The notes: a model not told the origin generated them from the letters alone. Positions 55,994 through 64,000 are shown, numbered from the stretch's first letter. The stretch: DNA of 64,000 nt from Tetramitus jugosus (GCA_937625935.1 OW569367.1:186001-250000); one strand, 5' to 3'. Numbers and translations: made by a program.

Positions 55994-58693
55994 ATGGGCA
56001 GTGTATTGCCATTGGACTTTCGAAAGAAACACCATAAGGAGTGGTATCTCGCAAAAACGCTCTGTATTTTGCTCATTCTCGTAACTGTTGGTCTCTACTA
56101 TGCAAGTGATCAGTTTTTGGGTAGCTTTACTGGAAATTCATCATCTTTGATAGTTGGTGATGATGCTCTTGGTACGTTGACCTTGAACAATCATTATCAT
56201 ATCAGTGGTGAGCATAGCTTTGATACGATGGAAGCAATTGGAGCACTCGCAGATGTGCAAGGAGGTGATAATGGAACATTTCCTTTTGCAAACTTGACTT
56301 CTTGCGCACCGAAAACCATTCCTTATGTGTATCGTTGTCAATTTGTGAGAAAACACAGTGCATGCGGCGCAAATGTGTACATGAGGATTCAATATTGCAC
56401 GTTTAAGAAGAAATTGGAACCACTTTATTTTATTTTGGCGGTAAGTACCACAAAGTTGGTTGAGTTGTTGTTTGTTTCATTTGGTGAAAAAGCTCACATG
56501 TTTTTTTGGCTCATTTCTGTGTGCGTGTAGATTCTATGGTTGTTGCTCTTGTTTTACTTGTTGGGAGATACTGCTGAAGCATACTTTTCCTCTTCTCTTA
56601 TTAAAATCTCTGGTTATTTGAGATTGAGCCCGAATATCGCTGGTGTGACGTTGTTGGCACTAGGAAATGGTGCACCTGATTTGAGTGCGATCATTGTGGG
56701 TGTTTTGTCAGGTGATACGGATATCGGTGTTGGTGCACCCATTGGTGGTGGTGTTTTTGTTACGACAGGCATGTATTTTCTTTACGAGGAACTATGCTTC
56801 TATAGTTTGAAGTTCTCGCTGTTTTGAGTTGGAGACATGACTAACATGGTTGCACATTTGTTGTTTTGTTTGTTAATTTGTGATTTGTTGTGAAAACTGG
56901 ATGATAGTGGTGTTGGGAGCTGTTATTTTGTTTGCTGATGTGAAAGTGACTCGGAGACCATTCATTCGTGATGTTGTTTTCTATCTCTGCTCCGTTCTCT
57001 GGGTGTTTATATGGTTCTTAACAAACAAGGTTTATATTTGGCAGAGTATCTTGTGCCTTGTATTGTATTTGCTGTATGTGTTGACTGTGGTGTTTGGTAG
57101 AATGATCTATCAAAGACTCAAGGCACGAAGATTAAAGAAGCAAGCGGTGACTGAATTGGAGAAGGCAGAGCAGAAGAAGAGCAGAAGATTAATGAAAAAG
57201 GAAAGAAAACAACAGAAGCAACAAACTGAAAATGCTGACTTGAGTGTTGGATTGTTAGACAATGAAATCGAGCCGGATATACAATCCGAAACGAGCTTAG
57301 TATCTCTTGTGATTAACGAGAACGAGAATTTTGGTAAGGAGATTGATTCGGATAGTGATTCAGATGATGACTCTGAATCTGAAGAAGAGCATTGGGCTGG
57401 TGGACTGTGGCGGCGAAAACCCTCCTTTGTTCAATACGATAGACAATCAAGTGTTGATTTGAAAGACGAGACAACTACAGAAGTACCGGAAATCTCTGAG
57501 ACGCCAGATGAGAATTCGAAACCAAAATTGAATCCTGCAAAGTCGTTCTTTTATGGCCCAAAGATGGGTATTGTCCAGAGAGGTAATGATGACGAAGCAT
57601 TGGTGATCAAAGAATATTTTGATGAAGAGGGAGATGGTATGTGTTTTTATTTTGGTTGTCGGCCATGGAGTATGGCGCTTACATGCATGTTTCTTAATCA
57701 TAAACAGAGAAGAAAAACGAAGAGCTCACAGAAGTGAACGACGATTCCGATGACGAAGTAAAGGAAAATAAGGTGAAGAAATTCTTGGTTGATCTCATTG
57801 ATTCCACAGGTTGGTTCGACATGCCATGGTACGAGAAGATTACCTTTGTTCTCTTTGGTGCCATACTCGCCCTGTTGCGTAATTTGACGATTCCAAAGTC
57901 TGATGACGAAGAATGGAACAAGTACTTTGCTACTCTCATCCCTATCTTCGCTCCAGTTGCTATTTTAGTTGCAATCAACAAAGTTCATATCTTGATTGGC
58001 AAAGTTTTCCCATTAGCTGTGTTGTTGGCACTGATTGGCGCAGTCCTTGGAGTTTTAGTCTTTTTGTCAACAAGAAGATCCAAACCTCCTATTTATCACT
58101 TTGTATGTATTATATTGTTGGATGTACTGTTGTCGCCGTAAGTATTTTATTAACAACCCGTTGTCATTTAGTTGTTTGTCATTTTCGCTTTCGGTATGTC
58201 CATCGTTTGGATTTATATGGTTGCAAATCAACTACTTAGCTTGTTGGAAGCATTGGGAAATGCTTGGGGAATTGACAAATCAGTACTTGCCCTTACTGTT
58301 TTAAGTTGGGGAAATTCCATCGGAGACATGATTAGTGACATTGTGATTGCTAAGCAAGGATTTCCGTCCATGGCCGTTGGAGCATGCCTAGGAGCACCGA
58401 TGCTCAATTTGCTGCTTGGTCTTGGTGTTGCCATGACTTTCACACCGGAGCAGTTATCCAAGAGATGCTTCTCAATGGAAGCTGATGCACCGACTGCTGT
58501 AGCATTCTTATTCCTGTTGGTTTCTCTGCTTAGTACGCTTATTGTGATTCCACTCTCTCGATTTAGGGGCTACAAAGTATATGGTGTATATCTTATGCTT
58601 TTGTATGTTTGTTATCTAGTGTTGGCGGTAACAACTGCACTGAATCCGAAGTTGACCAAGGCCTTCAGTTGGAAACTGGGTCGTGGTTGTTGA
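55994..58693 (+). CDS. Cation/Ca2+ exchanger, CCX/NCLX (SLC8B1) family, multi-exon
   Basis: Alpha-1 repeat LSPNIAGVTLLALGNGAPD, RRPFIRDVVFY, alpha-2 repeat LTVLSWGNSIGD and GFPSMAVGAC.GAPMLN. Confidence 0.92.
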
Positions 58694-58696
58694 AAT

Positions 58697-58835
58697 TAAA
58701 AGTTTACAATTTCCAAGGATGTAGTTCGGTGAAATAAAACCCATAATAAAAAAATTATGATTTCCCGAGAAGACACCTTAACGCTCCTACATAATCGGGA
58801 CTTACATAGCAGCTTGATGGAGTGAGCCTTGGAGG
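58697..58835 (-). ncRNA. Putative Fanzor omegaRNA (scaffold plus flank-derived guide); boundaries approximate
   Basis: Stem UCCCGA/UCGGGA (58795-58800 with 58763-58768) and stem CAUAAU/AUUAUG (58754-58759 with 58742-58747). Loop AUGUAG (58787-58792) is complementary to CUACAU (58719-58724) at the element end, a pseudoknot. Position is immediately 3' of the Fanzor stop. Confidence 0.65.
58715..58731 (+). repeat. Terminal inverted repeat at the Fanzor 3' end: AAGGATGTAGTTCG(g)TG
   Basis: 14/14 (16/17 extended) reverse complement of 62256-62272. Confidence 0.8.
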
Positions 58836-60577
58836 TGTTCCACCATTTTGATTAATTCTTTTGCGACTCGGACGACAGAGACATTCAACGTTCCATTCCT
58901 GTCTATTCTCTTATGCTTGACTGGCTTCATGTGAGAATGGCAATGATGACATTTCTGACTTGTCATGAACTCGTCGATCATTTTCACTTTGAAGTGCTCA
59001 TTCAACTTTTTCAATAGCTTTCCTTTTGGTGTTGGAGCATGTCCTTTGTAACAATGACCAAAACCAGCATTGCCCATCCCAATTAACATGCTTCTTCCAT
59101 TTGCTCTCTTTCGAAAGTCATTCATAACATTGGCAATCGTCTTATCTCTCATTATATAGCTATCCCAATTCAGTCTCTTCACCTTTGGGGTGCAATAAAA
59201 ATTCAACAAATCATCCTCGACTTTCAATACAGAATTGATGTGTTCAAGGAACAGACCACTTGTTGGTACACCGGCCTGTTTGATTGAGTTTTGGAGTTCA
59301 TCCAAGTTCTTCTCATTCATTTCGTTCCATTCTGCTTTGTATTTCAACAATCGCTTGGAGTTTTTCGAATGGTGGGACAGATGTCTATATGTTTTGTTAG
59401 ACAACTCCCACTTCTTGCCATCTGAATCAACACAACTCACCAACGTAACAATACCCGGGTCAATCCCAACCAAATATTCAGCACCTTCGTTCATACTTGT
59501 TTCCTTCTTTCTCTTCTTTGCTTCTTTCTGGTCCTTGGATTCCTTTGCCTTATTGTTCTTGTGATTGCCAACGAGTTGATGTCTGAGAACAACAGAGGCC
59601 TGAATACCGTCAGTTCTGATTGAGTCGATTTGAATCTTCTTTGTTCCAACATTCAAACACTTGAGATTACACTTCAATTCAGTTGACTCCTCGCCCTTCT
59701 TTTGTCTTCCTTGTTTCTTCTGTTTAAGCATATCAACTAATTCCTTTGTGCCAATCTCCATACACCTGCACTTGAAATGAGACAAAGGAAGTAGTGCAAA
59801 CGATTTCATATTATTGTTGATCAGAAATTGTTGAACATGCCAGTAAAACTTCAGCATGTTATTGGTGTTGTTCTTCACAAATGATTCATCAATTATTTCA
59901 TCAGTTTTAGCATCAACAAGTGTTCGAACCTCTCGGATCAACACAGGAATCGTCTCTATCAACTCTTTTGGAGGCAATTTGATAAAATCGTGGACAGGAG
60001 TGCTAAATGTCAACCTTCTGATAATGTATTCAACAACCCTTCTTTGTTCTGACTTTGGAATAGATGAGTCACTGTGTAGTTGATTCATTCTGACCCTCAG
60101 ATACTTCCTCAGTCTTGGTTCCAATGTGAACTTGAGCATGTTGGAGATGTTGACATTGAGAGACCTGGCAACATAATTGATGGACGTGGCAAAACTCTGA
60201 TAAATCTTTCTGAGTTTGACTACTACATCGTCCATGTTGACAGACTCGTTGATGAGACTTAAGTTATTGTCTCTTGGTTTTGAATTGCGTCCAAACAACA
60301 CAGAACCTAATCTTTGAAGAAACACTTGATCTAATAAAGGGATTTGATAGTCAGACTCCAAGTGCCTCAAAACGAATATGTTTATAAATCTTGTGAGTCG
60401 AAGAGCAATCCTTGTAATCTCCAGAGCTTGAGTCTGTATGATTGGTAACAGAGTTGGATGATGCAACAACAGAGACTTCAGACCGACCTTGACCACGTAA
60501 TGTGATGAGTATTCATTCTTTTTGACAGTCTCTCTCTTTCTCTTTCTCTTGCCGTCCTTCGGCACGCCTCGTGGCAT
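58802..60577 (-). CDS. Fanzor1 (eukaryotic TnpB-derived RNA-guided RuvC nuclease), 591 aa from the ATG; C-terminus atypical
   Basis: NLS KRKRKR; Fanzor1-type VVKVGLKSLL, FALLP and SIRTDG motifs; RuvC-I VGIDPG; IGMGNAGF with rearranged RuvC-II IDEFMTS; CHHC zinc knuckle. Confidence 0.9.
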   Translation of the reverse strand: MPRGVPKDGKRKRKRETVKKNEYSSHYVVKVGLKSLLLHHPTLLPIIQTQALEITRIALRLTRFINIFVLRHLESDYQIPLLDQVFLQRLGSVLFGRNSKPRDNNLSLINESVNMDDVVVKLRKIYQSFATSINYVARSLNVNISNMLKFTLEPRLRKYLRVRMNQLHSDSSIPKSEQRRVVEYIIRRLTFSTPVHDFIKLPPKELIETIPVLIREVRTLVDAKTDEIIDESFVKNNTNNMLKFYWHVQQFLINNNMKSFALLPLSHFKCRCMEIGTKELVDMLKQKKQGRQKKGEESTELKCNLKCLNVGTKKIQIDSIRTDGIQASVVLRHQLVGNHKNNKAKESKDQKEAKKRKKETSMNEGAEYLVGIDPGIVTLVSCVDSDGKKWELSNKTYRHLSHHSKNSKRLLKYKAEWNEMNEKNLDELQNSIKQAGVPTSGLFLEHINSVLKVEDDLLNFYCTPKVKRLNWDSYIMRDKTIANVMNDFRKRANGRSMLIGMGNAGFGHCYKGHAPTPKGKLLKKLNEHFKVKMIDEFMTSQKCHHCHSHMKPVKHKRIDRNGTLNVSVVRVAKELIKMVEHLQGSLHQAAM

Positions 60578-60949
60578 AATGTTATTGTATTTGTTGTGTG
60601 GTGTATTTGTTGTGTGTTGTATTTGTTGTGTGAGTTGAATCAAACAGCGAAAAAGACAGCGCTTTTTAAACCGAGGAAGATGGCCGTTGCCGTTGTAAAG
60701 ACAGTCTCAACGGAAATTTTTACAACTGCACCAATTCCGCAGCTTAGAGGAAACTGATACAACATTTATTGTATTTTTTTATAATATATCCACCTATCTA
60801 TCCAATCTTGAACCAAACGAAAGACAACGAAAAACTTTCTCTCTGACACGACAACAACAACAACGAAAAACACAAGTCGCACAACGAACATCAACAACAA
60901 CAACAACAACCAAATCAATCAAAAAAGATGGAGAGTCGACAAGAGGTGT

Positions 60950-61597
60950 CTATTTGCAGTGTGCATTGTAGATTCTCTGAGCAAGTTTCAAGTAGGAGAA
61001 TACAAGCGGTACCAATGTGTATTGAATTCTCTTGACACCACCCTGACCAAAGTGCTTTCTGGCTGCGGCCAAAACTTTAAACAATTGATCAGTATCGCTA
61101 TTATCAAACAAATGAACCAATCTGGCAATCAAGTTCTGTTCTTCTTCGAAATCTTCGAGCAATGTTGCAGCTATTGGTGAGTCGTCAGAAGGTGAGAATG
61201 TTGTTTGGTCTTCCTCATCCTTCAACAGTGGACGAATCAAATCAAACAGTTTGTTCACTTGTTCAAATGTTGAAATCTTGTGTCCATTGTCAAGTGCGCA
61301 TCTCACAATGCTCAGTGCAATAAACTTTCTCTGTTCATATCCAAGAGAATGAATAATATCACCATACTTCTCCAACTTCAAAACTGTTAGCACATTGTTG
61401 TATGACTCGAGTGGCACCAACAACAATCGCTTCAACATCTCTACAATTTCATCTGAAGCAAGTGCAGTGCTATTCAATTGACTAGCAATGTTATTAATAA
61501 TCTTGTTGACATAGTCAGTGTTATCAGGATATGTTTGAAGAGCAAGTGTCATCAATGAGATCTGAATACTCAAGTTATCGGACAATTCAACACCTCT
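60950..61597 (-). pseudogene. VPS35: Internal fragment of VPS35 (retromer)
   Basis: SIQISLMTLALQTYPDNTDYVNKI, DFEEEQNLIARLVHL and ARKHFGQGGVKRIQYTLVPLVF. No room for the rest of the roughly 800-aa protein on either side. Confidence 0.85.
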
Positions 61598-61718
61598 CTA
61601 ATGGTATCAATAGGACAGAATTTGACAAACGTCAGAAAACTCATACTCATCATCAGGTCACCCGCATTCACGATGTCCTTCAGAGTGTTTGTTTTCTGTT
61701 TTTTGCAAGTTTTTTTTG

Positions 61719-62160
61719 ATGAAAAAAATACAAGGAAAAGGCGCCAAAAGAAGACATAACCAACACCAACAATTGGTAAAGTTTGGAGTCAAAAGAAAAG
61801 TAAGAATAACCGATATACATATTGATTTATTTGTGTATCTAGTTGGTTCGTTCCTTGGTGTAGAAGATGTGTTGAATTTGGTATTGACCTGTCGGGATTT
61901 TCGATCTTCGATAGTCAATAATCTATCAACAATAAGGTCTTATATGGACAATTTGTACTCATACTGTTTGGCCGTTTGCAGGTCAGGCTTACCGTGCAAA
62001 TTGCAAAGGAAATTTTTTGTGCCTGTTTTGATTGCTTGTTGAATCAACAAGTACTTGACCGCATCCTAAGCAGAACCATGAGGCAGTATTCATTATAATA
62101 CTCTTGGCTGAGACGGAACCACAGCCGGAACAGAACCATTGATGAGATGTGGCAACCATG
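61719..62160 (+). pseudogene. F-box-like gene fragment, broken reading frame
   Basis: ITDIHIDLFVYLVGSFLGVEDVLNLVLTCRDFR is an F-box pattern. The frame stops at 62042; a possible continuation in another frame has further stops. Confidence 0.5.
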
Positions 62161-62255
62161 ATCGTAAGCTTGTGTTTGTGATTGGGTGTCGTGCACCTGT
62201 TTTTTTGGGCAGTCTGGAAAATTTATAGGTAGAGTTCTATTTATACGTTGAGGTC

Positions 62256-62272
62256 CAACGAACTACATCCTT
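62256..62272 (-). repeat. Terminal inverted repeat at the element 5' end, overlapping a TTAA
   Basis: caaCGAACTACATCCTT followed by aa. Adjacent subterminal inverted repeat cgttg..caacg (62246-62260). Confidence 0.8.
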
Positions 62273-62397
62273 AAGAACAGAGCATCTATCGTGAATCTGG
62301 GATTTCTCATCACTAGGTGAGCATTCTTTCCCTGCTGGCCATAATTGGCCAGAATCAACATCTCCACTGACTTTGTGCCCAACAGTTCTTATACTTG

Positions 62398-64000
62398 TTA
62401 TGATAAATCGTTCTGGCTTCCTAAAATTTGGGGCAGCTCGAATTTCGACTTCCCATCATAACAAACTACACCTAGGTACACCACAGATTCGATCTCTCCA
62501 ATGGACTTGAAGTCAGCAGAGACTGTGATCTGAGGGTCTTTGGTCACTGGAAGTTGTTGAGTATAGTTTCTAATTGATTCAACCTTATTAAAAAGATATT
62601 ACAAAAACTCAATGGAGGTATGTCGTCCATTTACGATACTTGCACATTCTTCAGATTCACATTTTTCAAACTTAGCTCTTCCTTCCAATGGTAATCGTAC
62701 TGTTCCTTCCTCACCACTCCCAAGGCAAAACCAGTGTTTGCCTTGCTCTTTCTCTTCTGCTCTCTCTCCTCTCTAATATGATCATACAAATCGCTGAGGA
62801 GACGATTCTTGTCACTCAAAAAATCTTTAGCTTGGGTGTTTAGAGTTTTCATCTCTTTATGTGCCTTCCGTCTCACCCATCGAATGGTTCTATCTGTTTC
62901 CTCTCTGTTTCTTTCGTCATTCTCTAGAATCATTTTCTGTCTTAATAAACTTCGTTTAAACATCTCTACACTTCTCGGCTCTGCTTTCTTCATTTGTCTT
63001 ACTGTTCTTTCCGTACTTCCAAAGAAGAAAGCATTATTTACTCCCGTCTTAGGAAGAAGGTGTTGTGTGCCTGCTTTTGCTAGTTCTACGGGTGGTCGGT
63101 GAAAACGGCTCAATAATGGGCTCATGGTGTATGAATTCCAGAATCTATTGTCAATATTCATATCCTTCACCAAGGGAGTGCTCTTAGAATAGTGATATGT
63201 ATTATCCATGCTTGTTTTGACCCTCGCACGAACTGATGTTGGCTTTCTTTTGCGTGCGGATGGAGCCGTGGTCACTTTTCTGTCGATTAGCGAGAGCGTA
63301 CACTGACGACGTATCATATTGTGCACTGATTGAACACTATAACGAGGACTTTCGATTCTCTGTTGAGTTTCTAAATCCTCTCTAATCCCTTGAAAACTTA
63401 CTGCCGTTTCCCTCACTGCTGAAATCTCATGTTCTTCTTCTATTCTGCTCTTATGATCGGTACCTGCACCTCGAAACAAGTCGGAAAGAGCATGCTTTGA
63501 TGAATCATCTACTGTTTCAATCGATACTATATCGTTATCATCTGCTACGACTTCTGATATTTCTTCGTTTTCCTCTAAAATATCCTTGTGCTTTCGATCT
63601 TTTCGCTGATTATCCCAATGTTTTGGAAAATATTTTAGAATTCCTCTCTCTATCACATTCTTTCTTAACCGTATTCCTGTTAACATTTCAGATATCAATT
63701 CGTAGACTCTCATTTTAAAAGAGCTGGAACTAACTGCTTTAGATCCTGGAAAGTGATGCCTGAATCCCTTTACGATAGAATATGATATTGCATAGTGGTA
63801 ACAATCGAAGAACGCATCCCGATCATCCCTACTCATTTTCCAAAATAAACCTCGAATAGAGTTTGACATTTCATCTACCATTGATGTCAGTGAACTATCT
63901 GACATTGACTGTTGTTGAAAAAATGCACAAAACACGAACCAGAAACAGGTATTCAGTACAGTTCGAGATTCACAATTGTCAAAATACGACTTAAACTTTG
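62398..64000 (-). CDS. FAM227-like (FWWh domain) protein, 5' partial; tentative last exon 62583-62398
   Basis: The frame is open from the window edge: CFWFVFCAFFQ, RDAFFDCY, FRHHFPGS...FK...TG and TPLV. Possible GTATCG..AAG intron at 62584-62639. Confidence 0.65.

Follow-up and report, generated by a model that had tools for sequence, protein, structure and literature searches.

The 64,000-nt stretch of Tetramitus jugosus DNA analysed here as a whole (GCA_937625935.1 OW569367.1:186001-250000; the window) carries at 58717-62270 a 3,554-bp element which, very probably, is a non-autonomous cut-and-paste transposon inserted at TTAA, moved by a Kolobok-type transposase and belonging to a mosaic family. 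It holds a gene of the RNA-guided nuclease Fanzor1 together with three captured pieces of host DNA; intact copies of the family would home, and the copy in the window would be their passenger. The element is real, and it is one broken copy of a young multi-copy family. An earlier note on this DNA had proposed a non-autonomous transposon with terminal inverted repeats (TIRs), a Fanzor1-type nuclease gene, captured host DNA and no transposase. The family copies support this proposal, and no transposase lies inside the element.

The element sits between the CCX gene (a Na/Ca exchanger by its PF01699 domain match; stop at 58693) and a convergent FAM227-like gene whose open reading frame (ORF) ends at 62631. 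Its left end had been placed 21 nt past the CCX stop and its borders at a 14-mer at 58715 with an exact reverse complement at 62259-62272, and both observations were reproduced. Since the window contains 91 exact 14-bp inverted pairs, mostly CAA repeats, of which about 20 are not simple, a lone pair proves little. The end pair was accepted because of its copies: the 14-mer has 20 exact matches in the genome, against none for the reversed control, and both ends occur together, with unrelated flanks, at seven loci (C8, C11, C16, C23, C24, which is the window, C26 and C50). On the same grounds a chance inverted repeat was rejected, and a right end internal to FAM227 was rejected from the position where that ORF ends. 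The region has 94 matches in the genome, and homology among copies runs to 62270 instead of stopping near 60700, as the earlier note had allowed that it might. It was further verified that TT precedes 19 of the 20 matches of the 14-mer, the sole exception being the left end in the window, which reads CCAA; therefore the TIR is 12 bp long, starts with GG and is flanked by a duplicated TTAA. The length of 14 bp given before has to be corrected, the extra AA being half of the duplication. These A-type TIRs lie at 58717-58728 (plus strand, at the Fanzor 3′ end) and 62259-62270. The target-site duplication (TSD) is intact at 62271-62274, on the predicted target-adjacent motif (TAM) side, and damaged on the guide side at 58713-58716. 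Short derivatives that keep the end encoding the guide RNA (omegaRNA) with little Fanzor sequence were seen at G000 C4:597.9k, C8:461.4k, C35:56.4k and C52:269.7k, resembling the ‘ghost’ loci of the Spu-1 element. TIR matches with no Fanzor or transposase match nearby were found at C10:247203, C24:126318, C25:365143, C15:15258 and C52:91097, the last of which has a short transposase C-terminal piece.

The insertion site is polymorphic. The empty CCX-FAM227 site, for which a search had been suggested, was found as element-free alleles in two runs. In X1 the right junction (depth 17.5) stands beside an element-free allele (depth 26.3), and of two element-free alleles in X5 one keeps TTAA intact as a target, for which the evidence is moderate, its short side being 21 letters. 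The X5 joint runs from 58709 to 62269 with 18 letters between. Compared with the X5 allele with TTAA, about 17 bp of flank are missing from the window, in three pieces beside the guide-side TIR; hence the guide of this copy has ceased to match the element-free allele. The CCX-FAM227 intergenic region was seen in at least four alleles; the TTAA target lies within a segment of about 125 bp (window 62269-62404) that is missing from some alleles and, in the X5 allele, is bounded by a 10-bp direct repeat.

The Fanzor1 ORF (591 aa; 58802-60577, minus strand, ATG at 60577) is predicted to be dead as a nuclease in the window copy. It retains RuvC-I D373 and RuvC-II E536, the latter six residues ahead of the zinc finger (C543), as in Fanzor1 and Fanzor2. 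A 138-bp in-frame deletion at 58866/58867 has removed 46 codons present in sister copies, and with them the second zinc-finger Cys pair and the HNRD sequence containing the RuvC-III Asp, the third catalytic residue of a triad that in SpuFz1 is D383/E541/D606 (PMC11423790). The motif of Bao and Jurka, D-X(125,275)-[TS][TS]-XX-C4 finger-X(5,50)-RD (PMC3627910), is found in the intact sister L005 and absent from the window copy, which likewise lacks a complete RuvC triad with zinc finger, the second Cys pair and RD being missing. Full-length frames occur in about 20 sister copies, nearly all with the whole triad, and the ratio of nonsynonymous to synonymous substitution rates (dN/dS) between Fanzor lineages with intact catalytic residues is 0.11-0.18. 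This value denotes purifying selection, and therefore the family nuclease is under selection.

As to its type, SpuFz1 was the sole real Protein Data Bank (PDB) match of the window ORF, and the family profile matched SpuFz1 at E 1e-23 (positions 128-616) and GtFz1 at E 1e-3, with no Fanzor2 or TnpB chain at E<=1 in this search of the PDB. Judged by these matches, the nuclease is closer to Fanzor1 than to Fanzor2 or TnpB, in agreement with the motif-based typing made before. AlphaFold models of the transposase discussed below and of Fanzor were of low confidence (predicted local distance difference test scores of 46 and 49), a fold search with the Fanzor model gave nothing useful, and homolog searches returned no named proteins among their matches. 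The region upstream of the gene (60578-60757, minus strand), which comprises the 5′ untranslated region (UTR) and a likely promoter, is common to all copies with or without cargo. In a metagenome, relatives of the window Fanzor with about 61% identity (L051:2375-4556, L052:1725-3897) have a different conserved 3′ end, at which neither TTAA nor TIR was found; therefore this Fanzor clade seems to ride another carrier as well.

A second end type, B, starts with GGTGG, is also flanked by TTAA and carries the same Fanzor with or without cargo. Sliding DNA identity along the copies revealed, within the frames, Fanzor cores at about 100%, at 80% (two kinds) and at 60%, and the cargo and the last 300 bp are 98-100% identical across frames holding differing cores. 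There are at least four Fanzor alleles, with 56-100% amino-acid identity; trees of the 5′ and 3′ gene halves conflict, and A ends occur with three Fanzor clades. As read from these alignments, the copies are mosaics in which ends, Fanzor alleles and the cargo block reassort. A and B copies have ATTATGG in common about 30 bp before the 3′ end and diverge there, A continuing exactly like the end of the transposase element L048. B is probably the older frame, because B ends are more diverse and one is present on a cargo-free Fanzor relative, L053, in another sample. The left flank of this B-ended L053 (395-398) reads TCAA in place of TTAA. Within A-type TIRs there is also a second Fanzor, divergent and intact in its C-terminal half (L045, G000:C32:2808-4989), with an omegaRNA-like end of its own and the same internal TTAAGG. 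According to the mechanism favoured here, template switching in the course of break repair would have brought host DNA into a B-ended Fanzor element, and the cargo block would later have gained A ends through two switches, one of them at the shared ATTATGG. Such an end swap may have been tolerated because A and B both finish CC-TTAA and would close the same omegaRNA stem. The nuclease cassette is seen changing ends while the guide scaffold stays.

The predicted omegaRNA scaffold (58713-58820, minus strand), drawn from single-sequence folds, consists of hairpins and a closing stem. The last 108 nt fold better than shuffled sequences (z -2.5 to -3.0), and the internal TTAAGG (58781-58776) is predicted, in single A and B copies, to pair with the TIR end and the TSD, a kind of TIR/TSD pairing reported for Fanzor1 scaffolds (PMC10711439). 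The closing stem was not recovered in the alignment fold. RNA depth over this region was modest, 30-60, in X12, a single metatranscriptome available as contigs only. By analogy with known Fanzor1 and TnpB biology, intact copies would produce an omegaRNA that takes its guide from the flank beyond the 3′ TTAA, would cleave alleles that are empty or have been emptied, and would then be copied back by repair, which makes homing by the family plausible. For the window copy itself, the suggestion that a homing nuclease maintains and spreads it did not hold: since its RuvC-III Asp has been deleted and its guide-side junction is mismatched to the element-free allele, this copy is not expected to home on its own. 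Having lost the catalytic Asp as well as a guide that matches, it would be a passenger, and the damage to its TSD may hinder excision too.

It is doubtful, yet worth weighing before any other alternative, that the family is as described and Fanzor has no homing role. In that case mosaics, truncations and scars would come from gap repair after transposase excision, gap filling with template switching being a known origin of Pack-TIR elements (PMC8277862), and the flank bias would reflect transposase target preference. Concerning the bias, A or T precedes TTAA in 18 of 19 left flanks and in 14 of 27 right flanks (p 0.003), and the single left flank with C there is that of the dead copy in the window. 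The bias agrees with a TAM that extends beyond TTAA and leaves the CC-TTAA end of the element uncut, and it is explained equally well by transposase preference, T being found before TTAA in both transposase elements with a visible left flank. A one-sided CA outside the left end of Spu-1 is a comparable case (PMC10432273). In addition, bacterial TnpB and IscB are the only systems for which restorative homing is listed as demonstrated (PMC13565253). However, the constraint over all catalytically intact Fanzor lineages shows that the protein is selected for something, and the 5′-truncated copy L027 (C48) carries, 8 bp before its truncated edge, a repeat of TTAA and of the initial 9 nt of the target of its own guide, a scar compatible with a cut empty site that was only partly refilled. 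In L006 (G000:C2:615330-619372), which has no left TIR, the 3′ TSD with 9 bases of flank is found again within the cargo region of the same copy.

The earlier note had counted 1.6 kb of non-transposon sequence, of which about 1.25 kb, at 60779-62012, proved host-like, whereas the remainder is the Fanzor upstream region and about 260 bp of transposon-derived DNA (62013-62270). The first captured piece is a host promoter and 5′ UTR (60779-60931, plus strand, ATG at 60928) with 84% identity to a single locus, G000:C11:502404-502547; it points away from Fanzor and is antisense to the second piece. The latter, a VPS35 fragment (60960-61634, minus strand; PF03635, E 1.4e-44), comprises about 210 codons of one exon and about 37 bp of upstream intron, and is 98% identical to G000:C22:83229-83909. 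The third (61635-62012, plus strand) is the start of an F-box-like gene with upstream DNA, weakly matched to PF12937 (E 0.037); 18 bp holding F-box-like start codons are missing from the window copy at 61729, and the genome search found no separate host source. Beyond the cargo lie a stub of a transposase 5′ end (62013-62100, minus strand) with a WFCxGC motif, whose first 30 bp are common with B-type left ends, and the A-type left end (62099-62270, minus strand) with its TIR, two TATAAAT motifs and the first 20 transposase codons.

An RNA contig departs from the cargo at 61599, and the DNA match to the host continues to 61634. Since the cargo keeps about 37 bp absent from that contig, part of an intron that ends with an in-frame TAG ahead of the exon, capture at the DNA level is indirectly indicated and a retrocopy origin was rejected; by this comparison of RNA contig and DNA match, the host parent loci being only located, the cargo is captured genomic DNA. 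The VPS35 piece is found in about 20 element loci with distinct flanks, and its variation is neutral (ratio of nonsynonymous to synonymous polymorphism, pN/pS, 1.08). A selected VPS35 mini-protein was rejected from this ratio and from the want of an in-frame ATG. By sequence comparison, host DNA stands inside TIRs and its parental loci stand elsewhere (VPS35 on C22, promoter on C11), as in Pack-MULEs and Pack-TIRs, which likewise hold fragments of more than one host locus, are multi-copy and are often transcribed (PMC8277862); unlike them, the present element adds an RNA-guided nuclease gene with guide scaffold, a protist host and Kolobok-type ends. Partial cargo is present in L011, L014 and L030. 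A 133-bp tandem duplication within the cargo (window 61595-61727) is carried by A- and B-ended copies alike (L009, L010, L011, L012, L013, L015) and appears in the RNA run, and further upstream host pieces in the B-ended L015:27-1100, L017 and L012 match single loci on C21 and C13.

The cargo, which according to the preferred reading would ride neutrally, is also deeply covered by RNA. In X12, contigs over 60950-62130 have depths of 430-2500, against 0-6 for Fanzor coding sequence and 2-7 for the flanking genes, and element-specific junctions occur among the deep contigs; three DNA runs cover the element evenly, with no such contrast. This deep RNA is a lead, as the contigs carry no strand, their depth reflects expression poorly, and part of it comes from the mRNA of host VPS35. 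A bolder version of the proposal, considered unlikely, is that Fanzor1 cuts emptied sites, that repair from ectopic sisters drives the swaps of ends, alleles and cargo, and that the cargo yields abundant RNA antisense to the essential VPS35; if true, homing by a eukaryotic Fanzor would be seen in nature for the first time, on a previously unlisted carrier superfamily, and would work as an engine of gene shuffling. It is more unlikely still that the cargo is functional, its captured promoter driving abundant RNA antisense to VPS35, or convergent promoters giving double-stranded RNA, with effects on the host gene or on silencing of the element. The depth contrast, the junctions and the presence of cargo in most long copies speak for this function, whereas the data come from one unstranded metatranscriptome, no coding selection acts on the VPS35 frame, and the cargo-free copies L019-L023 also spread.

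Regarding the carrier, a transposase-like C-terminus on C47 is bounded by an A-type end, and homologs of that protein led to L054, a public contig in which TTAA-flanked A-type ends surround a transposase frame of 571+120 aa. Over 165 bp, the left end of L054 matches window 62099-62274 at 84% identity, and this element answers in part to the autonomous partner with the same TIR that the earlier note had called for. The same ends are found on the transposase elements L048 and L054 (A) and L055 and L056 (B-like). The L054 transposase (P0011) has D250, D334, D355-H358, H405/H410/C413/C418 and E532, invariant in five homologs, the catalytic residues being assigned by motif; this gives a D-D-DxxH-E layout with an H-H-C-C finger before the last E. 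A 4-bp TTAA duplication was observed at 19 of 20 A ends and 34 exact B ends, and the termini are GG..CC in both types. Kolobok elements are recognized by TTAA duplication, 5′-RR..YY-3′ termini and a DDE transposase with C/DxxH and, ahead of its last E, a zinc finger, and they have been reported from Naegleria and other protists, KolobokP/E/D/H carrying accessory nucleases or helicases (PMC9587614). The duplication, termini and transposase layout therefore fit Kolobok, and it is strongly inferred from these sequence features that the mobiliser is a Kolobok-type DDE transposase acting in trans on these ends. It is improbable that piggyBac, Sola3 or an unnamed MuDR/IS256-like lineage, TTAA-specific or of the DxxH clade, was responsible. 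The Pfam match of the transposase family is labelled ‘Mutator-like’ (PF20700), and the best fold match, from a low-confidence model and hence a weak DDE hint, is ISCth4 of the IS256 family (Z 7.5). Against this, Kolobok is stated to differ from piggyBac by a strict 4-bp TTAA together with RR..YY termini (PMC9587614), on which ground piggyBac was rejected, and DxxH followed by the finger is a layout absent from MuDR, P and hAT. A PF20700 profile search of the genome gave no match, the control search being equally silent, and the metagenome scan returned no element with both transposase and Fanzor.

Several points weigh against the explanation favoured here. The search of this assembly gave no intact transposase, only broken pieces on C1, C47 and C50, and the L054 frame itself has a frameshift. 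The Kolobok label was drawn from published criteria, and the nuclease activity of the family is predicted from sequence. A homing-type repeat is present in only one of the seven 5′-truncated copies whose left edge is covered. Finally, the check for misassembly gave a divided answer: the right junction recurs in an independent X1 contig (62245-62731), whereas the left junction and the 138-bp deletion are absent from the listed contigs, so that assembly error is possible. That the deletion and the CCAA are assembly or polishing errors at a repeat heterozygous in X1, the copy being really intact, is nevertheless very unlikely, as a clean in-frame 138-bp loss is untypical of polishing error, the deletion in L016 shares its left break point and other copies have distinct deletions in the same region.

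Among known systems, Spu-1 of Spizellomyces punctatus, with its nuclease SpuFz1 (PMC10432273), is alike in carrying Fanzor1 between TIRs without a transposase, in its many near-identical copies, in its nuclease-less copies and related elements with different inverted repeats, and in conserved bases outside the left end only; SpuFz1 is also the best PDB match of the window nuclease. The present element differs by its TTAA duplication and 12-bp GG..CC TIRs, where Spu-1 has 30-nt inverted repeats, by an identifiable matching transposase element and multi-copy host-gene cargo, and by several divergent nuclease alleles that recombine within one frame. GtFz1 of Guillardia theta (PMC11423790), a weak profile match, is a Fanzor1 with TTAA in its TAM. 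However, its locus seems to be without inverted repeats and transposase (PMC10432273), whereas TTAA here is a real duplication. Kolobok elements share with the partner elements the TTAA duplication, the RR..YY termini and a DDE transposase with DxxH and a following zinc finger (PMC9587614). A 2026 review does not list Kolobok as a carrier of Fanzor (PMC13565253), nor does the word occur in the main texts of PMC3627910, PMC10530073 and PMC10711439. The parts are known and the combination is new: a Fanzor1 gene between Kolobok-type ends, with cargo of the Pack type and exchange of modules.

These findings would add Kolobok-type elements to the known carriers of Fanzor. The family makes a natural role of Fanzor proteins in their own hosts testable, since it includes both intact and dead copies, its guides can be read, its sites are polymorphic or heterozygous, and it has an identifiable partner transposase and a predicted TAM, in which T-rich bases are followed by TTAA and the element's own CC-TTAA is avoided. 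Within such a family, the copy in the window matters mainly as a dead control and for its cargo.

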